64,000 nt of DNA from assembly GCA_965202585.1 (NCBI GenBank), contig OZ241826.1:27280001-27344000 (forward strand), written 5' to 3'. Below are positions 1,944 to 56,275 of the stretch, piece by piece (position 1 is the first letter of the stretch; every line of letters starts with the position of its first letter). The notes under the pieces are model-generated. The model searched no databases. It was not told the origin of the DNA and worked only from the letters and a program-made list of their open reading frames with translations. The DNA comes from Thalia democratica. Lineage: Eukaryota. Made by a program: the position numbers and the translations under genes.

Positions 1944-4043
1944 ATGCCAAAATCAAGAAAATCCAGACTAACTGTTTCAATAGAAAGTTTTTGTGAAGCT
2001 CTAATTGAAACAAACTATTATCAAAAAATAGATACCACTCCTAAGATCGAATTGTTAAGGTTAGTGGCTTTGAAAGTTTATAAAGCCAGTGACTCTGTGG
2101 CCAAAACTAAAAATAGAGTAAATGTTTTATCAAAAAGATGTGAATTATTTTTATTAAACAACCAAAAGGAAATTGATACTTATTTTTCAACACACTTTAA
2201 TGGCAGTGATTCAAATTTTCCAACAAAGTTTTCTTTAAATTTTGAATTCTCAGATATTTTGAATAATAATAATACATTCATTCAACCAAAATTTAAGAAA
2301 CAATGTATTTCAAAAATTTACTACAATTAACTCTTCATGTATACTTACTTGCAAGTATAGAAATATAAAAGTTAATAAACCTTTTGTAGTTTTAAAATTC
2401 TCTTGTAACTTTCCAAATTGTCCAGCAACTTACCATTTTACATTAAACAATGATTTTATAAATAATGAGTGTGATTTAAATTTCACAATAAAACAAAATG
2501 GTCCTATACTTCACCAAAAAGGGGTCGATAAGGCAAGATTTATAAATAAAGATAAGAGAAAAGAGATAGGTAATAAACTAATTGAAGGAAATATAAGTCC
2601 AGAGGCTCTTTATTATGATTTATTGTCAGGTATTGAAATTTCTGATGACATGCTAGACAAGGAGGATGACATTAAAAAGCTGGTGCCATCTAAGAGTGTA
2701 TTACGTCAAATCAAATATGAAACATTAAAAAACAACAAATTGGATCAAGATCCTTTTATTGAATTAATTAAGTTTAAAAAATTACAAGAAAATGAAAAAA
2801 ATTACTTTATTAAAAAAATTCATTATTCACCTCTTAGGGTTTTTCTCTTCCATGATAGTATGTACAAAGTCATTAAAAAGGAAATAGAAATTAAAAATTT
2901 TCTTGACATACACCTAGATTGCACCGGCTCATTATTTCAGAAATATACAGAAAAAAGGGCATTTTATTATTCCATTGCTTTGCCTAGTATCAAAAACAAT
3001 TCCTCCTTGTCATCATGTCCTCAAATTTCAATATATGACGGCATCCTTGCAGACCACACAACCTGTTCCATAAAAAATTGGCTCAAACATTTCATTAAAT
3101 TAATAGAAAAAAAAACAGACAAAACACACCCAGTAAAAAAAGTTACTGTAGACTTCAGCTGGGCTTTCTTACATGCCTCAGTTGAAGCCTTCAACAAAAC
3201 AGATTTAAAGACCTATTTACAAAGGTCATTTGAGGTAGCAACAAAATCTAAGCTGATGTCCGATTTTTCTTTTTTTACTTTGGTAATATATGTGCTGCAC
3301 ACTTAATTAAAAGTGTAAGCACAAACCTTGGTAAAATTTCAAAGTCTAAAAAAATTAAAAATAAACTTATGTATTGTTTTGCCCGGCTTCTTAATTGTGA
3401 TAAGTTGGAGAACGCACGTGAATTTTTTTTCCATTTAGTAATAGTTTTTTTGTCGGAATACGAAACTGAACTTTTTGCAAACAGTTTAAATTTTTTAAAT
3501 ATTCAAGTTCAAAATCCTGATTTTAATTTAAATTTTTCAAATGATAACCAAGGTAAAGAATTTACAGAATTTTATACAAATTTTCAATCTGGCTTAATAA
3601 ATGGGTCACCTTATAATTTTTTTTTAAATCAAGTGTTCTGTGAGGCAGAGACGGCAATTGGTTTGTCACCAAAAAATACAAAGAGGAACTGCTTATATTG
3701 CCCTGAATTATTTACATCCTCCTTTTTAAAAAAATATTTGGCCATTTATCCATTGTGGTCTGGTGTCCACTTGGTCGAAATGGACAAAACAAGGGACACC
3801 TATTCATCAGTGGAAAATTGGTTCAGACAAATAAAAAAAAAAATTCAATACAAAAGACTTAGAATTACTGAATTTATAGAGAAATTATACCATCAGATTG
3901 GCGCCAGATGTAAAGAAAGACTAGTATGTTTAAATAAAGTTATAACAATCAAAACAATTAAACATACTAGAAAATTAGATGACATTAGCTCCAATGTTGT
4001 TCAAGAACGTTGGAGCAAAAAAAGGTGCCTGGAACCAACTTAA
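1944..4043 (+). pseudogene. MULE DDE transposase split by two compensating frameshifts
   Basis: Frame shifts at ~2263-2327 and back at ~3270-3300. Stitched protein shows a C-x4-C...H zinc-finger-like segment (FSCNFPNCPATYHF...ILH), D in HLDCTGS, D in TVDFSWA, MULE CxxH motif (ICAAHLIK, read across the second shift) and E in SSVENWF. Confidence 0.85.
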
Positions 4044-4862
4044 AAAAAAAAATCAGTTTACTTTTCAACCCCTAAAGTGAAGTGTGGGTCAGATAATTTT
4101 TATCCTCTCATAAAGAAAACACCTTTAACATTCTCCAGCATACACAATGACAACAACTATTTTAAAAATTCAGAAAACATGCGACACTTTTATAAATTAG
4201 ATACTATTTACACACAAACAATGAAAAGAAAAGATAAAGAAATAATAAATAAATTTAAAAATTGTTCAATAACTGGCAAAAGTATAAAAACACTGCAAGG
4301 TTCTCAGTGGCTTGATGATCAAGTAATTAATGCTTATTTTCAATTAGTTTGTGATAGCAGTTTATTAAAATTATTTTTTGTAGATTTTTTAAACTATCAA
4401 ACTTTTAAAAGTTACCAAAAATTAAATTTGCCTTATAGCCTAAAAAAAAGTAAAGTCTTTTATGAAGGATTAAATTTAGTTATTTTGGCCATAAATTTTG
4501 CTAAAAATAAAAATGATGGCCATTGGGGCTTTGCAGTTGTTAATATAAGAGAAAAAATCATAAGTTTTTATGATTCAATTAGAAATTATGGTAGGGATTA
4601 TTATAATGGTCATTGTGTTTGTGAAGATGTTAAGAAGTTTATAAGGACCACTAACTTCATATCAAATATACCATCATGTGAATGGCAGCTAGATTATCCA
4701 GAGACACCTCAGCAAACAGATGGTAGTAGCTGTGGTGTTTTTGCTTGTCAGCTTGCAAAACAAATTTCAAGGAACCACCAATTATATATAGAAACTAAAG
4801 ATATTTCTTTTCTAAGAAAAGAAATGACCTGCGAACTTACCTTAGGTGTTTTATTTATGTGA
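4044..4862 (+). CDS. Ulp1/SENP-family (C48) cysteine protease domain, in frame with the transposase behind one TAA (4041-4043)
   Basis: WLDDQVINAYF, HWGFAVVN (His), FYDSI (Asp), PQQTDGSSCGVF (oxyanion Gln and catalytic Cys). No ATG of its own near the start; same frame as ORFs 1944 and 3369. Confidence 0.85.
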   Translation, partial: KKKSVYFSTPKVKCGSDNFYPLIKKTPLTFSSIHNDNNYFKNSENMRHFYKLDTIYTQTMKRKDKEIINKFKNCSITGKSIKTLQGSQWLDDQVINAYFQLVCDSSLLKLFFVDFLNYQTFKSYQKLNLPYSLKKSKVFYEGLNLVILAINFAKNKNDGHWGFAVVNIREKIISFYDSIRNYGRDYYNGHCVCEDVKKFIRTTNFISNIPSCEWQLDYPETPQQTDGSSCGVFACQLAKQISRNHQLYIETKDISFLRKEMTCELTLGVLFM

Positions 4863-17775: not shown

Positions 17776-19047
17776 CTAAAAAGTACCAAATATCTTTCTA
17801 TGCTTGTACAAAAAAACACCAGGTCTCCTGGCTTTTACCATGGCAGGCTTGTAATTATCCAATATTATCTCGAGCTCGTAGCTGTGTTTTGGCTTTGCGT
17901 GGTAGGTTGGCTTCCTGGTAATTTCAGGGAAGTCCATTAATAGTCTTTTGCATTTTTCTTCTAACGGAGTCGTATTCTTACCACCCAGATTAATGTGGTT
18001 GATTGAAGCGACTATAGGGGTGGGCAACTCAGCAGGTGCGAACAGTCTAGCTGATTCGTTTGACCCCATCTTGCATAGTTGAGAGGTAGATGGCAGGATA
18101 GCTAGTTCGTTCTTTCTTAACAGGTCCATGCCAATAATGCCAAAGTGGCGTGATTCTTGAATAACCCAGAACGAGTGGTTGATGGGTTCTAAATTCCCCA
18201 ATTGAAGTTCGACATCCGCGCTACCAATAGGGTGGGTTGTTTTGTTACCAAACCCTTGGATGGTTCTACTTTGTTTAGGAAAATATTTGTCTATACCGTT
18301 AGTCAATTCCTTCGGCAGGATTGAAATTTCTGATCCGCTGTCAACCAAAAAAATGACATTTGTGTTTGAATCCGCTACAAATATTAGGCCCTGAGGGAGG
18401 TTCTTCGGTTTGGGTGCAGGGAATTTATCTAGTTGAAATGTCCATTTTTTTACACTTTTATCTTTGTTGTGATTGGTAGTGTCGAGAGATTTTTGTTGTG
18501 ATTCTGGCTGCGGTTGCGCTGACCGTTGGGACTGCCCGTTGTGGTGCTGGCTAAGGTAGCTCGGATCGTTGGCGCTCGTCGTGGAGGTGCTGGCTTCAGT
18601 GGCGCTGACCGTTGACGCTGGCCCTGGTGATGCTGGCTGTGTTTGCGCAGACCGTTGGGACTGCCCATTGTGGAGCTGGCTAAGGTGGCTCAGATCGTTG
18701 GCGCTGGTCGTGGAGGTGCTGGCTTTGGCGGCGCTGACCGTTGACGCTGGCCCTGGTGATGCTGGCTGCGGTTGTTCAGAACTTTGGTTCTCATCAGGTG
18801 TTTCTGCTGCACTACGTGAGGCTGTTTGCTTTATATGAAAAATCATCTTTGGTTTGTTTGAAGGTGTGGACACTTCATTTCCTGGATGACTTATAGTGCA
18901 GTTTGAGGCATTTCTGGTTGGTCTCGGTTGAGATGGGGGTTGCTGTCGAGGGGCGGTTTTATTTACCAATTGGACAGCTTTTGTGTGAGATAGTGTAGCC
19001 CCAATCACTCTCCCTCTCACTGCAGAGAGTTTGAAATCTCGTTTTTT
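17776..19047 (-). pseudogene. Truncated pol: long S/T/P/Q-rich linker, aspartic protease, break just before RT
   Basis: -1 frame relative to gag; protease motifs FLVDSGSEISILP and GIIGMDLL; the frame passes into unrelated AT-rich sequence at ~17820 after KPAMVKARR; no YxDD, RNaseH or integrase motifs follow. Confidence 0.85.
18512..18770 (-). repeat. 129-bp (43-aa) tandem duplication in the pol linker
   Basis: QPASPGPASTVSA..ASTSTTSAND.S.LSQ.HNGQSQRSAQ occurs twice; GCCCTGGTGATGCTGGCTG at ~18621 and ~18750. Confidence 0.9.
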
Positions 19048-20774
19048 GAATGAGGCTGAGATATGGTTTGATGGCGCATACTACATCTCCTGTCAAAACA
19101 GGTACGGGTATTTACACCAAATCTCTGATGGTTTCTGCATATAATTTCATTTTTGTTAATGGCTGCCCATTGCTGTTGTGCTTGGGCTGGTCTGTTTTGA
19201 TTTGAGCGCGGGGCATTGCTATAGTTTATATTTCTAGCTCGTCCCTTTGCCTCTTGCTCATCTGTGTCGAGCATTACTTTCCAAGCCATTTGAAAGTCTT
19301 TGTCTTTCAGATGAAGCTTCTCCCGTAAACGATTTTTCAAACGAGGAGGTGCTAAGTGTATTGTGAGAAATTTTGTTAATACACCTTCATTTCTGAACTC
19401 AGCTAACCAATGATTAATCTCATCACCTAGTTCCCTACTTGACATGGAGTGCCTGTCAGTTCTTGCCAGTAGCACGTTGCTTACTCGCGCTTGCCCACTC
19501 ATTAGGAACTCTTTCAACGTGTCGTAGTTCCTATCTTCTGGTTTATATCTGTGATAGTAGCTCTCTCTCTCTTTCCAGGTCACTAATGTTTCAAGCAGCC
19601 TGTAAAGATCTTAATCCGATCGAATGTCATAATCGTTGGCGATCTTCTCAAAGTGTTTTAGCTTTATTTTTAACTGCTCTGTATCGCGCTTTAAGTATCC
19701 GATTTGACTGACAAGATCGCCCTTTTTCTGCATTAGTTTATACAGCTGGCTTGTTGTTGTGCGGGGCGTACTGCCACCTATGTCTACTGTGACGTCATAC
19801 CTACTATCTTCTGGCTGGGGTTGGCAGTTGTAAGACGGACTGCGAAAACATGGTTGGAAGTTTTCTTTCACACCTGACCCTCCTTGCTCTACTGAAGGTC
19901 CTCTATAGTTCGGAGGAGAGCGACTGGTCACCTGGCTCCTTGGTAGGTCTTGAGCCTTTGAGGTGTGTGAAACCTGGTGGGGAACCTGGATTTGAGGATC
20001 CATGTATGTATTCTGTCTACCCTGAGTTGAGATGTCGTGATTTGTCCTTGTGGATGGATTTGGACTTCTCAATTCATGTAATTCTTCTTGTAATTTTCGA
20101 AATTCCTCTTGAAGTTTAGCCTGTCGAATTTGTTCCTTCAAATCTTTGATCCCCTGTATTATCTCCTCGGCACTCAGTTCTTGAGGTGGCACTTGAATAG
20201 GGGGTCTCCTGTTGTTTTGGAGGGAATAGTCCATGTTTAAGTGGTTAGGTTGGAGTTGTTGTTGGAATGGCAAAGGTGAAGTTCTTGCTGGAGGAATGGA
20301 GCTGTTGCTAGGTGGTCCTGTCACCCTTGGTGGAGGCCCATAGTTGCTAGGTGTAGAATTTTGTTGGGGTGGGTAGCTTTGTCTTGGCAGACCACTTGGA
20401 TTAGGCTGGTCTCTAAGTTGTTGATAACTGCCCATTGCTGCCTGGGGCTCTTCCTCCTTTTGGTTATTTCCTGACTGATCCCCCCCTACGTTCATGTCAA
20501 TCTCGGCACTGATTTCTATACCCTGTGTATCAATTAAAGCGTGTTCACTCACGTCGTGGTCACCATATCTTTCGCACGCTGCTTGTGGTTGGTCTGATGG
20601 ACCAGGTTGGCTACGGCGCGAAGAGTGTGGGTCAACACCCCTTTTGTTAATTCCTCTGTCTATGTTACGTTGGCTACAGCGAGTTTCAGGGTTGTTGACT
20701 TTGTCTAAAGTATGATGTATGTTCTCTTTAGAGAACATACTATACTTTTTGGTGGGCTTGGGTCTATTACTCAT
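19017..20774 (-). pseudogene. gag (~585 codons) interrupted by a single in-frame TAA at 19611-19613
   Basis: ORFs 19611-20774 and 19017-19583 share a frame; C-terminal CRNHQRFGVNTRTCFDRRC = C-x2-H-x9-C-x4-C (CHCC type); slippery A_AAA_AAC at 19041-19047. Confidence 0.8.
20548..20565 (-). other. Primer-binding site complementary to tRNA-Trp 3' end
   Basis: Minus strand TGGTGACCACGACGTGAG immediately after the 5' LTR; plus strand TCACGTCGTGGTCACCA resembles the metazoan tRNA-Trp 3' end (…TCACGTCGGGGTCACCA). Confidence 0.85.
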
Positions 20775-30192: not shown

Positions 30193-33100
30193 GTGTGCAA
30201 AAGGGTGTGCAAAATTTGTTTAATGTTTTTAAGTACTTTGAGTAATGGTCTGTACTTTAAAAAAGCAAAATTAGATGTTTTTTTTAAGGAACTTTTTGTT
30301 TTAAAATTTTCGATACATTAGTTTCAAAAGGAGATGTATAAAATTGTTCATATTATAACAGATCTGCGAAATTCGAACAGTTTTTATAAAGAGTTGTATG
30401 TTTATAAGCAATTTACCTTATTTTATACCATTAGCCTGTTATTTAGACCTTTTGTAAACTTAAAATACTTTTTTTAAAGAAATATAAATTTTATAAAACT
30501 TTTTGTAAACAATGATTTAAATAAATTTTTAGTAAATTTTTGTTATAATTTAAAAAAATACTGAAACACATTTTCAGTTTGATTTCTCAGATATTTAACC
30601 ACAAATCCAGAATTGTTCCTTGCAATGTATCCACCTATTAGTTTAAGTTACCTAAAATTATACAAAATTCAGTGTATAATAAGACAATGTGGTTTTACTT
30701 TATTTTGTATGTTTCAAGGTAACTTAAATTAGTTGTTGTATACATTGCAAGAAACATTTCTGGATTTGTGGTTGTCTGAGCATCAAACTGAAAATAAATT
30801 TTATTTAATTAAAAAAATCTTAAGATTTTTTTTTTTCAAATTATTAGAATAGTTATACCTCAAACGTTAGAAAATATTCCATTTTATTTTAGAATATTAT
30901 TTTATGCTCAAAAAAGGTCTAAATTAAAGGCCAATGTTTGCTATAGTAACAAAAGTATTACAGTCCCCTTCGAGTATGGCCTCAACTATATTCAAATAAT
31001 ACTTATAAGTTTAATAACCAAGAAAAGCAGGATAAAAGAGATTTTTAGTCAATCTTTAAAAGTTTTAAACACCTAAGCAATTAAAAATATCATTTCCATA
31101 TGTTTGTCTGTAATGAACCTGCTGCGTTTACCTTTTCATATTTTGAAGATTTAATATGCAGTTTTCGTAATTAAAATGTATATACTTAAGTTTGTGTAAT
31201 CAAGCGCAATAAATCTCTCTAGTTACATTTGTTATTTTGATTGTGGTTTATAAGACATAGCAACTGAGAATTATACCTATATTATTGACTTAAAACTGCA
31301 CAAAAAACTTATTAATGAAGTTTTATTGTTCAAGTAAAAGAAAATTATTAACGAAACATGATTTGAAATCTACGCTAGATACTTTAGATGACGATGAGAA
31401 AAAAGTCTTGGAAATTTTTATTAGCAACTTTTTAAGAAACCTTGATAGAAGAGCCATATATTTTTTTAATTTTTTCAAAGGAGCACTTTTGACGAAATGT
31501 TCGGGAAACCCTGATTTAGATATTTTTTACTGTAATTATTACATCTTTTAGTGAAGAAGCAATAATTACATTTACCTTCTGCTGTTTTCTAAAGCCTTTA
31601 AAGTTTAACTATAACCAAAAGTAATAGAGAGTTATGAAGCCAACATGTATCGAAGGTTAATTTGAACAAAGTACCTTAGGGAGAAAAAATGAGTTTAAAA
31701 AGTGTTAACAGAGTTTTAGTCCTAATAAGTAACCTTTAGTTGGTGAAAAGTTTTAAGCTCTTAAAGTCGAAATAAAGCTGATAAATTTTATTCTACAAAA
31801 TTAAACTAGAACTGTCGTAACTTAAATCAAAAGAGTCAGAATTGAAATGTTAACTTTTAATTTCACTACGTCTAAATATTACTAACAAAGTTTAAGTCCA
31901 AAGAGCTAAAAAAGAACTGACAAATTTAAAGTCAACAGAAACAAAAAAGAACTTAAACAATTTTATACCATAAGTCACTGTAGAACATGTAAAAAAATAA
32001 TAAAATAGAATAAACAAAATGGTAGTCTAATCAATTAACACAAGTATTGAAAATGTATAAGTTACAAGTAATCACAAAAAATGGTGACCATTTTTAAGTC
32101 AAAGTTAGTCATATTAAATTTATGAAAGGTACTTAAATCTTAATAGCATAATAAAAACGATAAAAGTTATTAGTTGATAAGACAGCAATAACAAGTAACA
32201 CCCTAAGATATTCAGGAATTTCTGTCAAGGAAGTTAGCATGAAATTTAAATGTTATTGTTTTGTGTTTTTTATACTTATCTGTTTCAAATGCTGCAATGT
32301 TTATAGTAGGTTGTAACACACATTTAATACTATTTTTGAAATTAAAATAAAAAGTTTATGTAAAAAGATAAGTTTTTCTGGTTAAACACAATTAGTTTTT
32401 TTTTTTTATCAACAAAAAAAAAAATTAGAAATAAATTATAGCTAAATTTTTGAATTTTGTATATAATAAAAATTTTTTTGAATAACATTAGTCAATTTGA
32501 TTAAGTCAGATTATAAGCAATCTTAATATTCCAAAATAAACCAGAACTGTGGAAGCAGAAAGAAATTGACTGTAAGCCTTCCTTATTTTTTCAAAAGTGT
32601 CTTTGGTTAATTTGTTCACATACAAATTTCTTTGTTTGGTTTGGTAACAAAAAATGTTTGTTTTTTGTGTTAATAACTAATTGACATTTTTCATTGACTT
32701 TGTTGATTGGTTATTTACAGAAATCTTATTAATTAAGCAGCTTTCTAAAGTTGTTATTACTACTTTAAAAACTAATGTTCTATTTCAAATTTCTGCAGTA
32801 AGTTTCTGAAGAATTGCGGTGAAAATACATTAAAACTTTTGTGGAAAAACATTGACTGTTCTTTATGAAGGTATACAGTATAGTAAACTTATGTTTTTAA
32901 TGTTAAAAAAAAACATTAGTATTAGATTTTACCCCAAGTTATATTTTCATATGTGTTACTTTTTTTCCTTCTTTATAAAGGAAGGGTAGTGTTTATTTTC
33001 CAACAAAAAGGAAGAGGAGAAATAGAGTGATGATTCTCTTCGAAAAAAATGAAGAGGAAGTTGAACTGGAAATAAAATTTCATTTGATAACTGTTTAAAT

Positions 33101-36040
33101 TTAAAAATAGGTTTTTAAGCTGGAGCTCTTGTTCTTCCAAGCGTTTAAGTGAATGCTTGCAAGATCACGTGTTTTACTGATGCAAGTTTGCATTTGCATA
33201 CAATAGCCATATATTAATATTGTTTTATTGTAGAGAAATCATTCTAGACACCCTAACTGCTGCTAAAACTTTGTTCAGTAAAAGTTTGTGTTTTTTTATT
33301 CAGAGTAATTTTTTTTTCTAAACAATATTGATTTCTATATACAGTAAACGATTTATAATTTAATTATACATTTTAAAGTATCCTTATAAATTTGATATAA
33401 ATAAAATTTTTATACTCCAGTGAAAGTTAATTTCTAAAGTTTTTAATTTTCATAAATTTTTAAGTGTTTGTATCTGTTTTTGTGAAAGATATGTTTATTT
33501 ATGACATGCAAAGTTTTATATATAGTAGCACTAATTAACTTTAGTATAGCTTTAAGTTTCATAAATTTAATATTCTATATATTGTAGTTAATAGCGTGGG
33601 TCTGGGTTGCCATTTTGCCTGTAAAACTGGTAAAACCCGGAATTTTACAATTTAGGCAAAAAAAATCTGGAATTTGAGAAATTTTGAAAAATCCTTGAAT
33701 TTTAACATTAATTACTGAAAAAGCCTTGAATTTTAACAATTTTGATGTTACTAAGTAATAAATTTCGATTTGTCTCTGAAAATATAACAAATAGATAAAA
33801 AGGTTTTGTCATCATCAAGATTTTTTAAATATATTAAATGTAGCTTTAAAGTTTATTTTCAATGTATTTTTTTTATTTAACACAGTTTCTTACCTTAAAC
33901 TTAACTTTAAAAAAAAAAAACCCAAAATGTGTACTTTTAGAATCTTCGAAAAGTTTGGAAAACCAGGAAAAATTGCGACAGGGTTGCTACAACGTCAGGA
34001 AATAAAAGAAAGTCAGGGAAAAATAGGGGGTTTTGAAGAAAATTCTGGAAAAGTCCGGAGTATTGAAAAAATTTTTTAAAAGTCTGATTTTGTCAGTTTA
34101 AATTTACAAAATTCCAAATTTTTTAAAGCCTTCAAGTGGTAATAAAATAGTTAAAAATCCTTTAAAGTGAGATTTAAGTTTCAAATTTTTCCTAGAAATT
34201 GACAAATTTTTTTAGTTCTCATTACACTCATCAGGTATAAATTAATAAAATATCCTTTATCTAATTATCATTATATTATAATTAATATTGTTATTAAATA
34301 TCCTAAAATTGTTATTTTTACCTGTATTAAAAAAACATTAAAAGCTTCATATTATTTCAAGTGTTAGATTATGTATTTTAGAATAAGTTTGAATTAAGAG
34401 TATCATTTAGAAAAGTCATGAAATGTCAGGAAGAAATTGAGGTTTTGAAAAAAAGTCAAGAAATGTCAAAAAAATTGACAAAAATAAAAGAAAGTCAGAA
34501 TTTATTATTATAAATTTACAAAATTTTTTACTTTACAAATCCTTCAAATAGTAATACAACAATAAATAGTAATAGTGAATTAACTATACAAATAAACTGT
34601 GAGCTGAGATTACTGTTTAAGTAAACTTATAATAAATAATATAGTTTTAAAGTAAACATAAAAGTATGTACTTTTTTTACATAACTTCAAATATTTTCTG
34701 CTTCTTTAAATAATTTTTTAGACTTAAATGTAATTTTAAGCTAAGGATTTTTTTACTCGATAAATGCGTAGTGTCTAGTGTTACATTATGTTATTTTTGT
34801 TTTATAACTTACAACAAATAAATTAAGTTTACTGAACAAATAATTTTTTGTGCATCATATCTTTGAACCAAACATTTTGAGCGTTTTTATTTGTATTTCA
34901 AAAAATTTTGTATGATTGTATTAACTTTTTTAATTTTTTTATGTTATATAATACTATATAAATTTTTTTTATGTTATTTAAAAATATATAATAGTTAGAT
35001 ATAAACTTGACTAAGTATTTCAATCAAAATATTATGTGAAAAATAAAAATTAAAAAATTTAACACTATATACTAATAATACTTAAAATCCTTCAGCTCAC
35101 AACAATTTTACTTTTAACTCATTAAAAAACATTGTGAGCTGTTTTCCTAATGTTTTCATGTTTGCTACAAATATTGTTTTTCTCGTTTTATGAATTAAAT
35201 CTAACTTGCATTTTAAATTGTAATTTTCAAATATTTTCCACTGAATTTTTTTTTAAGGTATAGGATTAAACTGAATTTTAATTTTTATGTTGTTAGAAAA
35301 GGTTTTCGGAACATCGTGAATAATATTTTTAAAGTAAACAGAAAACTATACTAACTTTCTTTTCATTCATTTTATTAGTTGTTTTATTTTTTTGATTTCA
35401 AAGTTCTAGTTTATACAATAATAGGTTTTATTTACTCGTAAGAAATTTTAAAAGCATGTGGTCGGATAACAAAATTTACAAGTTTTTTTAGTTTTATTAT
35501 CACTCTTACTACTAACCCTTACCCTTGATTGGTAACGTTGTTTTTTTTATAAACAAATAATTATTTTTTTTTTAATTAGTTTCATTTCTACTTCCGTGCA
35601 AAAATTACTTTTCGTACAGAAGTGTCTTAGTGCAAAATTGTCCCATCGTGCATATTTGACCCGTTTCCCCTTAGATCAAACACTTAATGTAATTTTTTAT
35701 CATTTTAAAAACATTATATAAATATAAAAGCAATAAGTAAGTTTAGTATTAAAAGCATTGTCTGTACATTAACTAATTACTTGGTTAGAAAAAATGAACT
35801 ATTTACATGAGTTAGATAGATTTACATTTAAGTGTAAAAAGCAGTCAAAGAATATTTATACACAGTTCTTCTAGAACCCAAACTATTTATAGTGGTTTTA
35901 GAAGTTTAAAATTATTTTATACCTATCTGAGATAAGTATTTATATATATATTTATTTTTGTTATTACTGTGTATTCGTTTATATAACATTACTTACATAT
36001 AACAAGAAAAAATTAGAAAGTTTTTTAAAATTAGAATTTA

Positions 36041-36046
36041 TTACAG
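36041..36046 (+). promoter_or_regulatory. Candidate 3' splice acceptor 19 nt upstream of the ART ATG (also at 56295-56300, minus)
   Basis: TTACAG|ATTATTTAGTAAAAACATC-ATG vs TTATAG|ATTATTTAGTAAATATATC-ATG; conservation between paralogs is strongest from this AG onward. Confidence 0.45.
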
Positions 36047-36065
36047 ATTATTTAGTAAAAACATC

Positions 36066-37781
36066 ATGTACTCAAACGAAGAATGTTTAGATAAGACAAT
36101 CTCGCAGTTTCCTGGTCCTCAGAACTATTTGCGCCGTCTGTGCGAAAAAGAAAAGCAAATGACAAATTTTAAAATCGAAGAAATGGTTAAATATTTTAAA
36201 ACGGAAAAAGAAGAATTGGTGGAAGCAGCTGTCGATTTGTTTGAATGCGGATCTTCGGCTTTAAAAAAAGCTCTTTCAAAGGATTCCAAGCACGAGCTTC
36301 AACTGTTAGAAAGCGACGATCCGGATTACGATCTGTTGAAAGCATCTCTCGGTTTGAGTCAATTGAAAAAGTACTCAAATGAAAACGTCGCTCTTAGGAT
36401 TTACAGGGTCAAATCAAATGTTGAACGTTGCGGATGTCCGAGCTTGCTGCTTCTGCATGGCACCAAAGGGAACAACGTCGAGGGAATCTTGAGAGAAGGA
36501 CTGAGGCCTTCGTCGTCCGGCAAACATGGCCCCGGCATTTATTTGACAAACAGCTTTAAAATTGCTCACAATTACGGTCAAAACTACGTGGAAGACGATG
36601 GGATCGTAAAAGATTTGACGTACTTGTTTGTTAGCAAAGTGAAAGAGACGCTTGAAAGTTCAAGTTGTCTTTGTGGAGAGTGTAAAGAAGATCAGTATAT
36701 TACTCACAAATCGTTATTCGGTAAGAAGACAACTTCAACTAAGTTTATAAACTCGTCGTTTCTCAATCTTGACTCCAGTTTGAGTTACGAGCCCGTTTTA
36801 AAAGTTTTTGATGGAAATTTGCATTCCAACAAACAAGTTCAATTGGAAGACTTTCAAGCCCGAGAGTTTGACAACGACGGAAGCAGAATTCTTTCGGGCA
36901 CTTTTCAAGTAAGTGAAGTCGATAAAAAAATATTTGTGGCTCACCACGATCTAGTAACTCTCGAATACTTTATAGAAATCGAAGTAAAACAAAGTGTACG
37001 CAAGCTTGCGAAACATATTTTGTACGACGAACTCTGCCAGTTCAAGTTTTCAATAGACCCGCAAATTTCAGATCTGCCAAAAGACACGTTGATCGAAAAC
37101 AGTCATGTCAGTTCTGAAGACTGCTCCATGAACACTTTTGTTGCTGAGCTCGAAAAAGAAATAAGCGCCAATAAGCAGGCAGAAGTTGAATATGCAAAGC
37201 ATCAGTTTGAACGCAAAGTGAACTCTTTCATGCAGCAACTGTTGTTTGAAACGAGCAGCATATCGGAAACCAACGGTTGCGCCAAGTACAAAGCGGAGCT
37301 GCTTCAATTTTTAGATCCAGATTACCAGTTTGTGCTCGGGTCGATTACCGGAATGAGCCCGAACGCGGCAATCCAGAAAATTTTCAGGATCAACCCAGTC
37401 GACGAAAGCAAAAAGATGCACGGAGGCTTGCTCTACCTGCGGGGAGTCAAATCCCACGACGTGCCAAAAGTTCTGGCAAGAGGCTACCAGGCAAGCGACG
37501 AGGATGTGTTCGAACAATGCGAATGTGGACCCAGCTGCTATTCTAGCTACGCATCCGACGTCTTGAAATGTGAACTTTTACTTGGGTTAAGCCACTGCGT
37601 CACGAACGGACAGGTCGAAAAGCTGTCGTTTGTCTTAGTGGTTAGGGATGGAAAACGCGCAGACAATGTAGCTTTTCTCAACTCTGACACTAGAGGGTGC
37701 TGTTTTAAAACCGGGTTGCAAATAATACATCAGCCGATTGGCCTTATTCCGGCTTATTTAGTTGTTTTTAGCGTTCAATAG
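36066..37781 (+). CDS. 571-aa protein with two tandem PARP-like (ARTD) domains; domain 1 has an H-Y-I type triad, domain 2 is degenerate
   Basis: Domain 1: LLLLHGTK...GILREGL...GPGIYLT..FKIAHNYG...KKIFVAHHDLVTLEYFI. Domain 2 repeats the pattern: LLYLRGVK...VLARGY...SYASD...LSFVLV...LIPAYLVVF. Uninterrupted, clearly more GC-rich than flanks. Confidence 0.85.
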   Translation: MYSNEECLDKTISQFPGPQNYLRRLCEKEKQMTNFKIEEMVKYFKTEKEELVEAAVDLFECGSSALKKALSKDSKHELQLLESDDPDYDLLKASLGLSQLKKYSNENVALRIYRVKSNVERCGCPSLLLLHGTKGNNVEGILREGLRPSSSGKHGPGIYLTNSFKIAHNYGQNYVEDDGIVKDLTYLFVSKVKETLESSSCLCGECKEDQYITHKSLFGKKTTSTKFINSSFLNLDSSLSYEPVLKVFDGNLHSNKQVQLEDFQAREFDNDGSRILSGTFQVSEVDKKIFVAHHDLVTLEYFIEIEVKQSVRKLAKHILYDELCQFKFSIDPQISDLPKDTLIENSHVSSEDCSMNTFVAELEKEISANKQAEVEYAKHQFERKVNSFMQQLLFETSSISETNGCAKYKAELLQFLDPDYQFVLGSITGMSPNAAIQKIFRINPVDESKKMHGGLLYLRGVKSHDVPKVLARGYQASDEDVFEQCECGPSCYSSYASDVLKCELLLGLSHCVTNGQVEKLSFVLVVRDGKRADNVAFLNSDTRGCCFKTGLQIIHQPIGLIPAYLVVFSVQ

Positions 37782-38572
37782 ACTTTCTATAAATTATCTT
37801 AACACAATTAAAACGACAGCAATTTTCGTTTAAACATTTAAAAGTAACTGTTGTTTTAAGTATTTAGAAAGTTCTATACGTTATTTTTATACAGTTTTAT
37901 TTTTTAATAAACAGTAATTTAAAATAGTAACTAACATGATATTTTCTTAAATTCTCAGGTTTGTTTGAAAAATATGAAAGTACATTTACTTCCTAACTAA
38001 AAAATTTTCGATAGTTTTTACAGGTTTATCATTTAACCAATCAGCTAACTTGATTGATTATAGCTATGGTAGATTTGTAACAAAAAAACTTTACTGTTGT
38101 CTTTCTATTTTAGACACGATTAACTAAAACATTGGCTAAAGACTTGAGAGCCTAAGCCTGGACTTGTTTATGCCATAAGACAAGCTGAAGTTTTTCAATA
38201 AGGAAATTATAACTGACAAGTTGGCCATGTCTCATAATTTTTATTAAATAACACCCGTGATAAATTTTAACCTCGCTTTGAGGTTGTATTACTTTCGAAA
38301 TAGTAAAACACCTCTTTTAGTTTAACTTTGTTAGTAAATGTTTATACATATTTGCGATGTGTTAAAACTGTTAATTAAATAAAATTTTGTAATATTTTTT
38401 AACAGTTAAAAACAAACAATATCTAGTTCTTCCTTTTTCAACAATATTATTGTTTATTGAACGACAAAAAACGCTTATAAAGTTTGGTCCGATGATCTGA
38501 TGCATAAAAATCCTTTCAATTATCGAGTTATACACCAAAACTTCATGTCCAGGACAGACTATTAAACGTTTT

Positions 38573-39560
38573 CAGGGTCATTTCAAGCGAAATTGCGTTG
38601 CACGTAAGACTAATATTGTCAACATTTAAAAAATACTAAGTCATTTTGCATATTTGACTTCTTACTAAAGACTAAAGCTAATGTATTTTTTATGCTTCTA
38701 CATGGTACTTAAACACTGCTAGTTTTTTATTACTTATATTGCTTTTTTTGCATTTATAACTTTGCATTATTGTCAATATATTTCCAAAAAAAAACTACGA
38801 AGTGTTATTCTTCCACGATCATAATATTTTCAAACATGGTTAAAATTACTGCAGAAAAAATTAATTATTGTATGTTTTTTCATTAGGACACGGTTAAATA
38901 CAATTACTAAATTATAACGTAAACTAAGTAGCAAAATGTATAACAAAACTGTTATGTCTAATTAAAAAATCAAATAAAAGATATATCAGGCTAGGTTTTG
39001 ATTTAAATTGTATAACATTTTTATTAAGAATTAAAAAATGTTTATGATACTTATAAATAGTAAAAAAAATACAAACATTTTCCCCTTTCAAAAACTAATG
39101 TTTTTAGGGTCATTTCAAGCGAAATTGCGTAGCACGTAAGACTAGTATTGTCAGCTTTTTAAAAGTACCTATATCATTTAGCATTTATGCCATTTAATTA
39201 AAGACTAAAGCTAATTTATTTTTTATTTTTGTGCATGGTATCTACACAGTGCTAATCTGTTATTAATTTAAGTGCATGTTTTTTCTGGCAGTAATAGCTG
39301 TTTTGGTATTTGTTTTTATAACACAAATAAATATTTAAAGTTTTATTCGTCCACGGTCATATTTTTTTTTACTTTTGTTAAAATTACTGTAGAAAATGTT
39401 GACTATAATTTGTTTATATTTGGAAAGGTTTAAATACAATTGATAAATTACAACGCAAATTAAGTAAGAGAATGTTAAAAAACTGTGATATTTAGCGTAA
39501 TAATGTATGCATATAATAATTGCAAGTTTAACAAAATAAAAAAATTAACAAATTTAATTT
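38573..39560. repeat. ~532-bp diverged tandem duplication downstream of the ART gene
   Basis: AGGGTCATTTCAAGCGAAATTGCGT.GCACGTAAGACTA.TATTGTCA at 38574 and 39106; only one copy in arm B (~53700-53790). Confidence 0.8.
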
Positions 39561-40705
39561 GTCTGAAAACTTCAGGTTTCAAGCTTGAAAATATAAACTT
39601 TTTTAAATATAAAGTCTCTAAATTAAAACAAACGCGTCATTTCATATTATTTTTTAATTAGTTACGTTGTATTTTTTAAACCCATGCGAGTTTTTAATTA
39701 AGGGTTGAAAAATAGCTGAAACATTATTTAAGTTGTTCTAAGTAATCTCTCAACTACTAAAATATTTTAGACTAAACATACTAAAGTTAAAAATGTTGCA
39801 CAAAAGAGGAAAGTAAACAAAAGTGCTTTAAAGCAATAAAGCAATTTCTGGTTGTATTGTACAATGGTAAACGTTTCTAGGTGGTGTATGGGTTATAATG
39901 ACTTGATTTATGTTGTTGAACGTTGAAAAATAAAAACTCGCTAATCAACACATATGCAAAACAAAATCGTTTTTTTTCTTCATTTTTTTTATAAAATTGG
40001 TTCTGCTTAGTAATACAATTTTTAACATGGATACAATAATTTTCATAGAAGAGACGTTTTTAGTTACATACAAGTTTGAATTGGTTGGTATTATAACAAT
40101 TAACAAGTTAAGATCGCAAACTGACATTACATCGTTACTTTGGGTTTAAAAATGTTTTATCATTAAATTTTGTCGCTTCAACACTTTCTTAGTTGTTTTT
40201 TATATAAATAGTTATTGAGTAATAAGTTGACCTGAGCTAATTAAAACAAAAGCCTTGTTTCTTTATAATGCCAAGAAATTTATATAATATTCATAAGCTT
40301 TTAAACTTATTTTGAAAGACATTACTTAAATGGTACAATGAAAAGACTCAAACTGTACTTTAGTGATCTATTTAATTTAATTAAGTAAATATTATCATTA
40401 TACTTAAACGACAAATTTTATTTTATCATTATAAATTTCGAAATGATATCTAAACTAAAGTAAATGTGCTAAGTGTTAATTTTAAAGGACAAGTAGAAAA
40501 AACAATTGCAGAAGTTTATAAAAATCAATTATCTAAAGTTGTTTTACTTAATATTTTTATAAAGATTTAAAACAATATACAGATAATATATTGTTTTTAA
40601 ACAAATATTTTGACCTTAAGGATTTTAATTTGTAGAAGTAATTTTTATTTTTTTAAACAAATTACTAGTATTAAAAAAAAGATAATTTTAACTTGATTTT
40701 ATTTA

Positions 40706-54545: not shown

Positions 54546-56275
54546 CTATTGAACGCTGAAAACAACTAAATAAGCCGGAATGAGGCCGATTGGACGTTTC
54601 ATGATTTGCATTCTGGTTCTAAAACAGCACCCTCTGGTGTCGGAGTTGGGAAAAGTTTCCCCATCCACGCCTTTGCCGTCGCTCACCACGAAGACAAACG
54701 ACAGCTTTTCGACTTGTCCTTTCGTGACGCAGTGGCTTGTTCCTTTCGAAAGTTGCCAGTCCAAGCTGGTGGACGCGTAGCAGGAGCAGCGACCAGTTCT
54801 ACACTCGCACTGATCCAAAAAATCTTCGTGTTTCGCCGGGTATCCTCTCACCAGAACATTCACCACCTTGTCTGCCTTGACTCCTTGCAGGTAAAGCAAT
54901 CCTCCGCGTATCTGTTCATATACGTCGACTGGGTTGATCCTGAAAATTTGCAGGATTGCCGCTTTCGGGCTCATTTCGGTCATATACCCGTGCACAAACT
55001 GGTGATCTTGATCTGAAGTTTGCAGCAGCTCCGCTTTGTACTTGGCGTAATCGTTAGTTTCCGAGATGCTGCTCGTTTCAAACGACAATTACCGCATGAA
55101 AGAGTTCACTTTGCGTTCAAACTGATGCTTTGTATATTCTACTTTTGCCCGCTGATTGGCGCGTATTTCTTTTTCAAACTCGGCAACAAAGGTGTTCATA
55201 GAGCAGTCTTCGGAATTGACAGGACTGTTTTCGGTCAACGTGTCTTTTGGCGAATCTGAAATTGGCAGGTATTTCGAAAAATTGGTCAGGCATAGTTCGC
55301 TGTACAAAATGTGTTTCGCAAGCTCGCGTGCGCTTTGTTTTATTTCGATTTCTATCAGGTACGCTAGAGTTACTAGGTCATGGTGAGCCACGGCTATTTT
55401 TTTTCGTCACTTACAACTTGAAACGTGCCCGAAAGAATTTTGTTTCCGTCGCTGTCGAACTTGCTAGCTGAAGAATCTTGGAATTCAACTTGTTTGTCGG
55501 AATATAATTTTCCATCGTAAACTTTTAAAACGGGCTCGTAACTAAAACTGGAGTCATGACTTTGATACGACGATTTTATAAACGCAGTTGAAGTTGTCTT
55601 CTTACCGAATAAGTTTTCACGATTTCTAACAGACTGGTCATCTTTACACTCTCCACAAAGACAACCTGAACTTGTCAGCTTATCTTTCACTTTGCTAACA
55701 AACAAGTACGTCAAGTCTTTTGCGTTCCCATCGTCTTCCGCGTAGTTTTGACCGTAAAGTTGAGCAACTTCAAAGCTGTTTGTCAAATAAATGCCGGGAC
55801 CCAGTCTACCGGAAGACGAAGGTCTCAGTCCTTCTTTCAAGATTCCCTCGACGTTGCTCCTTTTGGTGCCGTGCAGAAGCAGCAAGCTCGGACATCTGCA
55901 TCGTTCCACATTTGATTTGATCCTGTGAATCCTGATAGCGACGTTTTTGTTCGAGTACTTTTTCAATTTGTTCATTTCACCGCTCAAACCGAGCGATCCT
56001 CTCAACAAAACGTTATCCGGATCGTCGTTTTCCAACAACTGAATTTCGTGCTTGGAATCATTGGAAAGAGAACTTCTTAAAGCCGAATTGTTGCATTTAA
56101 ATAACTCCACAACTTCTTCAACCAATTCTTCTTTTTCCGCTTCGAATAGTTTGCCTATTTTTGCGATTTCAGTTTTCGTCTTTTGCTTTTCTTCTTTGCA
56201 AAGATGGCGCAAATAGTTCTGAGGACCAGGAAACAGTGAGATTGTCTGATTTAAATAATCTTTGTTTGAGTACAT
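54546..56275 (-). pseudogene. Paralog of the tandem-ART gene with one frameshift and one nonsense codon
   Basis: ORFs 55394-56275, 55089-55391 and 54546-55088 align end to end with the 571-aa protein; one A is missing in an A8 run at 55397-55404; TAA at 55089-55091 replaces the paralog's CAA (Gln); same terminal ...SVQ-TAG. Confidence 0.88.

Follow-up and report, generated by a model that had tools for sequence, protein, structure and literature searches.

A tandem PARP-type ADP-ribosyltransferase with a predicted NAD+ site in the first domain and a degenerate second domain, from an expanded gene family of Thalia democratica

How is a gene to be read that seems to encode the same enzyme domain twice, once with and once without the residues expected of an NAD+-binding site? 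The question is raised by an intact open reading frame (ORF) for 571 amino acids (aa) in a 64,000-nucleotide stretch of the genome of Thalia democratica (assembly GCA_965202585.1, contig OZ241826.1, here C1; C1:27,280,001-27,344,000, in the following called the window). A first-pass annotation of the nucleotide sequence had proposed a tandem double ADP-ribosyltransferase (ART) in one polypeptide, and this was borne out: the frame is uninterrupted, its two halves are homologous and both are modelled as the ART fold of the poly(ADP-ribose) polymerases (PARPs). The gene belongs to an unnamed, undescribed and very large family, in whose members a unit of lead helix plus PARP ART occurs in duplicate, the second unit being a conserved pseudo-ART. 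The explanation that is considered probable combines an NAD+-binding, mono-ADP-ribosylating domain 1 with a non-catalytic domain 2, in a family whose expansion may be related to genetic conflict. PARP-type enzymes have a central part in antiviral defence and in stress signalling, and knowledge about them stems mostly from about 17 vertebrate paralogues. A natural pair of enzyme and pseudo-enzyme, fused in one chain, would make the role of an inactive PARP domain directly testable. The coordinates of all features are collected in Table 1.

Fold and origin of the two domains

The full-length AlphaFold2 model, built from a 42-sequence family alignment, shows a mean pLDDT (predicted local distance difference test) of 77.5 and a pTM (predicted template modelling score) of 0.71, with low-confidence stretches at residues 197-240, 331-349 and 482-493. 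A long lead helix precedes domain 1. Residues 62-308 align with the ART domains of PARP3, PARP2 and PARP1 (VIA-align, Z 16-17, root-mean-square deviation (rmsd) about 3 Å, about 180 residues aligned), and Foldseek gives an expectation value (E) of 3e-8 for the domain. The relationship is also detected by sequence. The family profile finds PARP3, PARP1, PARP15 and PARP4 chains (E 1.7e-7 and weaker), the alignments spanning the KYKLELL..DxDY strand, the HGT motif and the region up to GxGxY, and the Pfam PARP family PF00644 matches residues 126-193 with 28.2 bits (cut-off 26.7) and 40 of the 42 family members (best E 2e-13). With a profile score above the threshold, a PARP-type fold and both the His and the Tyr of the triad, domain 1 falls into the PARP catalytic domain superfamily (H-Y-E clade). 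Both domains match PARP-type chains only, and with its His and Tyr domain 1 does not show the pattern of the R-S-E clade.

The NAD-binding His (in HGT, 131-133) and Tyr (in GPGIY, 155-159), which the first-pass annotation had recognised in domain 1, are retained throughout the family (40/42 and 42/42, respectively). Gly132 is found in 41, Thr133 in 39, Tyr170 in 37 and Ala167 in 40 of the 42 members. By spacing, His131, Gly132, Tyr159 and Tyr170 correspond to PARP1 H862, G863, Y896 and Y907, and Ala167 to Ser904.

Modelled on their own from a 48-row alignment, residues 345-571 yielded a more confident model (pLDDT 88.3, pTM 0.83). An exhaustive comparison of domain 2 with 48,161 representative chains, done without Foldseek, placed PARPs or pseudo-PARPs in all top 18 positions (Z 11.7-6.5): PARP2 (11.7), PARP1 (11.6), PARP3 (11.5), PARP4 (11.1), PARP10 (10.7), PARP15 (10.4), PARP16 (10.1), PARP13 (10.1), the full catalytic domains of tankyrases (9.0-9.3), RCD1 (8.0), the TASOR pseudo-PARP (7.6) and SRO1 (7.0). 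A shorter tankyrase 2 entry is the 18th chain (Z 6.5); the next row scores 5.6, and later rows are helix-only matches of about 4.5. Foldseek recovered PARP4 with domain 2 at E 3e-7. As judged from the model, the C-terminal half adopts the PARP ART fold, and the comparison of both halves with PARP catalytic domains that the first-pass annotation had called for thus turned out in its favour.

The NAD site of domain 2 is degenerate, as had been proposed from the loss of its His. The His position is occupied by Arg459 in the window copy and varies among the relatives (H14, R9, N6, Y3, T3, Q2, K2, D1; n = 42); since 14 of them still have His, the degeneration was gradual. In place of the GxGxY loop there is a variable, Cys-containing loop (residues 485-491), the first-Tyr position holds Tyr in 15/42, and the second-Tyr position holds Lys in 21/42 and Leu506 in the window copy. 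Other residues are well kept, namely Gly460 (39/42), Asp541 (40/42), Arg543 (31/42), Gly544 (36/42), Pro562 (40/42) and Tyr564 (41/42), which form, among others, the motifs D541-x-R-G and P562-x-Y-L. A PARP fold that has lost the NAD-binding triad and is still under constraint corresponds to a pseudo-PARP. With neither the His nor the Gly-rich Tyr loop nor the second Tyr left, domain 2 is regarded as non-catalytic.

Two small Cys clusters had also been pointed out, and both exist. CLCGEC (residues 200-205) lies inside the low-confidence insert of domain 1, and its Cys residues occur only in close relatives; the pattern C-x1-3-C ... C-x-C in the domain 2 loop is present in about half of the family, and the window copy has three of the four Cys. 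As family-defining zinc sites the clusters were rejected.

Both halves derive from one module. BLASTP aligns the N-terminal with the C-terminal half at E 3e-4, and hhalign aligns the profiles of domain 1 and domain 2 with a probability of 99.4% (E 1.4e-21); the 164 aligned columns comprise the lead helix, the DxDY and HGT strands and the strands after them. A tree was computed from 23 first and 23 second domains together with nine single-domain relatives and two Gig2 units. In it, all 23 second domains form one clade on a long stem (SH-aLRT, Shimodaira-Hasegawa-like approximate likelihood ratio test, 99), so the duplication is old, and the single-domain proteins branch among the first domains. 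This topology indicates a single internal duplication that predates the diversification of the family, after which domain 2 changed faster. The single-domain relatives are metagenomic proteins of 217-252 aa (P0139, P0140, P0143, P0145, P0146, P0148, P0149, P0152 and P0153) that lack the long lead helix and constitute one clade; the module may have looked similar before it was duplicated.

Selection was estimated from pairwise ratios of non-synonymous to synonymous substitution rates (dN/dS) among 21 intact paralogues. The ratio is 0.42 for the whole protein, 0.26 for the core of domain 1 (62-196), 0.39-0.46 for domain 2, 0.56 for the Cys loop and 0.96 for the disordered insert (197-243). With 0.39-0.46, domain 2 is maintained and not decaying.

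The third triad position and the question of catalysis

The third triad position is that of PARP1 Glu988. The structural alignment ends with model residues 308 and 309 on PARP1 residues 1008 and 1009, so that Tyr301 corresponds to Tyr1001. The last hairpin of the model (288-292 / 297-307, with a four-residue turn) agrees with that of PARP1 (NEYIVY-DIAQ-VNLKYLL). Alignment ends and hairpin together give a gapless register with Lys288 at Glu988 and Ile289 at Tyr989; in the model, Lys288 is therefore the more likely occupant of the Glu position, rather than Ile289. Of the earlier proposal, which had placed Ile at the catalytic Glu, the lack of an acidic residue stands, with neither Glu nor Asp at 287-289 in the window copy, while the register favours Lys288 and moves Ile289 one residue on. 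Position 288 is K or R in 28 of the 42 members (K17, R11) and position 289 is I or V in 30 (I25, V5). The catalytic Glu that precedes the last hairpin in the polymer-forming H-Y-E enzymes is replaced by Lys288/Ile289; for the hydrophobic residue of the H-Y-(I/L/Y) mono-ART PARPs, the gapless register offers Lys288 and a one-residue shift Ile289. A profile of residues 262-312 matched no PDB sequence even at E 10, and the PF00644 match ends at residue 193. The active site is unusual, with His and Tyr kept, a basic residue likely at the Glu position and Ala for the nicotinamide-binding Ser.

The proposed explanation can be outlined as follows. The protein contains one module twice, each time with a PARP-type ART domain behind a long lead helix, and the pair goes back to one internal duplication of old date. 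Domain 1 would bind NAD+ via His131/Gly132, Tyr159 and Tyr170. If active, it would transfer single ADP-ribose units, like the Glu-less PARPs, and no polymers; mono- and not poly-ADP-ribosylation is expected because no acidic residue occupies the catalytic Glu position. Domain 2 would be a non-catalytic partner, most likely serving the recognition of a target or ligand or the regulation of domain 1. The family grows through tandem and segmental duplication and leaves broken copies behind.

Several observations weigh against this explanation or parts of it. The register at 286-289 derives from alignment end-points and not from a residue-level superposition, and acidic residues are close by (E284 and D286 in the window copy, E287 in 11 of 42 relatives). 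We know of no human PARP with a basic residue at the Glu position. In PARP1, Ser904 is the serine that binds the nicotinamide amide, and this position is taken by Ala167; together with the basic residue, the exchange could mean that domain 1 binds NAD+ without transferring ADP-ribose. A complex prediction for domain 1 and domain 2 gave a score of 0.00, with the supplied alignments unused, and provides evidence in neither direction. A parsimony count per site in the 21 paralogues, a small sample, revealed no significant non-synonymous excess and no signature of an arms race. In the four sequencing runs that contain the stretch, intergenic DNA is covered as deeply as the gene, which identifies them as DNA runs.

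The strongest competitor is that the whole protein is a pseudo-enzyme, whose domain 1 binds NAD+, ADP-ribose or nothing and which acts as a sensor, reader or scaffold like PARP13/ZAP, PARP9, TASOR or RCD1/SRO. The missing Glu with Lys288 likely in its place, Ala167 at the Ser904 position and the weak sequence matches to PARPs (Pfam only 1.5 bits over the cut-off) all fit this proposal; on the other hand, 37-42 of the 42 diverse members retain H131, G132, Y159 and Y170, whereas the same positions vary freely in domain 2, and no part of the protein is more constrained than the domain 1 core. Since the residues are kept and the core evolves at a dN/dS of 0.26, the pattern is that of an NAD site still in use, and the pseudo-enzyme is judged to be rather unlikely. 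A poorer candidate is an ART that modifies nucleic acids or small molecules, or one that employs an acidic residue via a shifted register. In its favour, the basic residue in 28/42 can be adduced, as can E284, D286 and the E287 of 11/42 relatives, and some PARPs are reported to modify DNA or RNA ends (PMC5861426). However, no recognisable nucleic-acid-binding domain emerged from the Pfam search, the proposal is built on an absence of evidence, and little probability is assigned to it.

Relatives and known systems

The homologue search for taxonomic range and copy number suggested by the first-pass annotation led to unnamed, partly marine metagenomic relatives and at least 150 genomic copies. 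A word-indexed protein search returned eight relatives, all two-domain and all unnamed, and an exhaustive profile search 616 representatives at E <=1e-3, 97 of them at E <=1e-30. Among 20 clusters looked up, all were unnamed ENA, JGI or Logan records except one of Astyanax Gig2e. The relatives traced to a named source lie on Tara Oceans marine metagenome contigs, again as a single open frame in AT-rich, gene-poor DNA, and the contig of another relative is a JGI sample record. Feature and shape searches of the Atlas recovered generic PARP clusters only. In the AlphaFold DB, the uncharacterised proteins A0A6P8ZTG9, A0A834I2D6, A0A7S1CMD4, A0A7D9J928 and A0A812JAX6 align over both domains with low template modelling (TM) scores (0.18-0.22), and several uncharacterised entries span query residues 39-571 at TM 0.19-0.20 and rmsd >20 Å; other proteins with two PARP domains may exist in named eukaryotes. 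The architecture had been called unfamiliar. A literature search on tandem or duplicated PARP domains and on PARP expansions in planarians found no description of it, but tandem PARP-like units as such are already known from fish Gig2 (PMC3617106).

The Gig2 proteins of fishes and amphibians (non-amniote vertebrates), which are induced by virus and interferon, carry one, two or four PARP-like units each (PMC3617106). Gig2 resembles the window family in its stand-alone PARP-like units without targeting domains, several of which occur per chain, and in its lineage-specific tandem gene expansion (PMC3617106). The sole named match among the clusters looked up, P0134 (Astyanax Gig2e, E 2e-20), is aligned by hhalign over only 49 columns of the His-to-Tyr core (31% identity). 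Gig2 units differ in being short and nearly identical to one another and in having a C-terminal motif of their own; the conserved C-terminal part specific to Gig2 units is missing from the window protein. The units of P0134 keep acidic residues near the Glu position, and Gig2 has neither a lead helix nor a degenerate second unit. By sequence comparison, the window family is an analogue and distant cousin of Gig2, not the same family.

The best structural matches of both domains are PARP1, PARP2 and PARP3 (Z 16-17 for domain 1, 11.5-11.7 for domain 2), with which domain 1 shares the His, the Gly and the two Tyr of the NAD site. The window protein differs from them in lacking WGR, zinc-finger and BRCT domains and the catalytic Glu, in having a single lead helix in place of the helical regulatory domain, and in the long disordered insert within the fold. 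A Pfam search up to E 10 likewise found no WWE, macro, ankyrin, WGR or zinc-finger domain, in agreement with the first-pass annotation. The Glu-less mono-ADP-ribosylating PARPs comprise PARP7, 10, 11, 12, 14, 15 and 16, with the triads H-Y-I, H-Y-L or H-Y-Y. They share with domain 1 the kept His and Tyr and a non-acidic third residue, and structure and sequence searches with the window protein returned, among others, PARP10, PARP15 and PARP16. In the window family, however, the third residue is most likely Lys/Arg (28/42) and not hydrophobic, and macro, WWE, zinc-finger and transmembrane parts are absent.

Domain 2 shares the PARP fold and a non-functional NAD site with the pseudo-PARPs (the C-terminal domain of PARP13/ZAP, PARP9, TASOR DUF3715 and plant RCD1/SRO), but its chain also carries an apparently competent copy of it. 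Beyond the fold, no relation of domain 2 to these pseudo-PARPs was found in sequence. A further parallel is offered by the binary actin-ADP-ribosylating toxins (VIP2, iota Ia, C2I, CDTa), in which tandem ART folds arose by duplication and one is inactive. They likewise unite an active ART and an inactive ART-fold adaptor in one chain by internal duplication, but belong to the R-S-E clade, carry the inactive copy N-terminally and are secreted bacterial toxins. They are not among the listed structural matches, where the only toxin row is a PE-like toxin (Z 4.3).

Copy number, genomic setting and flanking signals

The genome (801.8 Mb in 1,833 contigs) was searched for further copies; the counts, taken from genome search listings, are lower bounds. 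The full-length protein matches at least 77 places, the majority being full-length and stop-free, and a 95-residue ART core at least 150 places that were scored from 892 first-look candidates, as expected from the proposal of a lineage-specific, duplicating family. At least 72 copies form an array at C1 27.20-28.42 Mb (1.2 Mb, about one copy per 17 kb), and about half of the array copies have open frames of at least 560 aa. More distant subfamilies, whose ART cores are 49-65% identical and whose open frames are 550-680 aa long, occupy clusters of their own on C1 (91.8-94.8 and 101.2-101.4 Mb), C2 (14.9-19.2 and 57.0 Mb), C4 (53.8-55.1 Mb), C6 (34.26-35.08 Mb), C8 (60.2-60.6 Mb), C9 (43.78-44.20 Mb) and C10 (28.50-28.55 Mb). 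The superfamily is thus spread over many local arrays. With 892 first-look candidates in about 800 Mb, at least 150 of them scored as ART-core matches, it is to our knowledge among the largest PARP-domain expansions.

Five other copies are 97-99% identical to the window gene and 0.3-1 Mb away from it. The six copies with 97-100% protein identity lie at C1 27316066, 27639676, 27830369, 28086381, 28253631 and 28305345, neighbours being 50-320 kb apart. Their sequences are consistent either with very recent large block duplications in the array or with a collapsed/duplicated haplotype in the assembly. A second copy within the window is broken; its frameshift lies in an A-run near 55397-55403 (residue 287/288) and its stop codon at 55089-55091 (Gln391). 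The recurring block of about 8 kb around the gene is, by its sequence, a segmental duplication and not a bounded mobile element or the result of transposition.

This pattern, in which array copies are both gained and lost, suggests that the family takes part in host-parasite conflict, with an action that is either antiviral or directed against mobile elements. A bolder version, which is put forward tentatively, regards the double-ART genes as invertebrate innate-immunity effectors with several hundred members, analogous to Gig2 and to the fast-evolving mammalian PARP9/14/15. Domain 2 would then serve for recognition or as a decoy, and would direct or gate a mono-ADP-ribosylating domain 1 against viruses or mobile elements. 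If this is a true defence family, Gig2-like, domain-minimal ART immunity would extend beyond vertebrates.

It has further to be considered that a mobile element or an endogenised virus carries the gene as cargo, and that the copy number is owed to transposition, not to a host function. An intron-less coding region, a very large family and a repeat-rich region with LTR (long terminal repeat) and Ulp1-protease elements in the same window would suit such cargo, but at least 72 copies lie in one 1.2-Mb array and the other subfamilies in local clusters, the duplicated block comprises colinear flank and gene without terminal repeats or an adjacent transposase, and with a dN/dS of 0.42 most frames are open; mobile cargo is accordingly deemed very improbable. 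That the array consists of silent, decaying duplicates without present function, to which the many broken copies (including the second copy in the window) and the lack of RNA among the sequencing runs containing the stretch could be attributed, is just as hard to credit, given that about half of the array copies are open over at least 560 aa, that dN/dS is well below 1 in both domains and about 1 in the disordered insert, and that an upstream signal is conserved.

This upstream signal and other features flank the gene, which stands out as an island of 39% GC in a window of otherwise about 25% GC. The N-terminus is well defined since the MYSN start recurs in paralogues and in relatives of only 35% identity. 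The TTACAG motif upstream of the ATG is kept in 10 of 11 other aligned upstream regions, which belong to paralogues and to one relative of different sample origin (64% identical); their proteins are 64-76% identical to that of the window gene, whose own motif is not counted. Together with the T-rich tract it is a candidate splice or trans-splice acceptor, in which case the coding part may form one exon of an mRNA with a spliced leader or a 5' untranslated region (UTR) intron. In many paralogues (loci L011-L030 and L001), a TTACTTAC-like element, also upstream of the ATG, is conserved along with TTACAG and the T-rich tract. The TTACAG signal may thus be a family-wide trans-splice or 5' UTR intron acceptor. 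Downstream, the candidate polyadenylation signal is not exactly conserved at locus L001. The product is probably a soluble protein; no signal peptide is evident by eye and no targeting domain was found.

Table 1. Features of the double-ART gene and its duplicate in the window (positions counted from the first letter of the window)
Feature	Position	Strand	Basis or remark
Coding frame, 571 aa + stop	36066..37781	+	Single uninterrupted ORF; start MYSN kept in paralogues and distant relatives
TTACAG, candidate 3' splice or trans-splice acceptor	36041..36046	+	20 nucleotides 5' of ATG, T-rich tract before it
Lead helix 1 (residues 19-57)	36120..36236	+	One long helix ahead of domain 1; AlphaFold2 model, pLDDT ~90-95
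Domain 1, PARP-type ART fold (residues 62-308)	36249..36989	+	Structural alignment, Foldseek, profile matches
His131-Gly132-Thr133, equivalent to PARP1 H862-G863-S864	36456..36464	+	Hidden Markov model alignment to PARP3 and PARP1
GPGIY (155-159) through Tyr170, equivalent to PARP1 Y896 and Y907	36528..36575	+	Alignment to PARP1
Low-confidence insert holding CLCGEC (residues 197-243)	36654..36794	+	pLDDT 26-30; almost neutral dN/dS
Lys288-Ile289, start of the strand bearing the catalytic Glu in PARP1	36927..36932	+	Lys288 at the Glu position by gapless register (more likely)
Lead helix 2, duplicate of lead helix 1 (residues 355-393)	37128..37244	+	Model and profile alignment of halves
Domain 2, pseudo-ART (residues 401-571), PARP fold, degenerate NAD site	37266..37778	+	Stand-alone model, structure searches
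AATAAA, candidate polyadenylation signal	37906..37911	+	125 nucleotides past stop codon; read from sequence
Block of ~8 kb around gene	31900..40015	.	Recurs inverted and colinear at ~52.9-61.2 kb, 72-80% identity
Second, broken copy, 68-69% protein identity	54549..56275	-	Frameshift and stop

Two other elements were noticed in the window. On the minus strand, an LTR-type retroelement is represented at 17776-20774 by three ORFs in succession (387, 188 and 414 aa), the longest of which encodes an aspartyl protease of retroviral type (PF13650, E 7.7e-7); beside them lies no ORF of at least 150 aa for a reverse transcriptase or an integrase. On the plus strand, three adjacent ORFs (227, 224 and 261 aa) are located at 2623-4862, the first two without a Pfam match and the last with a Ulp1-type C48 cysteine protease domain (PF02902, E 1.3e-13), which occurs in several kinds of DNA transposon.

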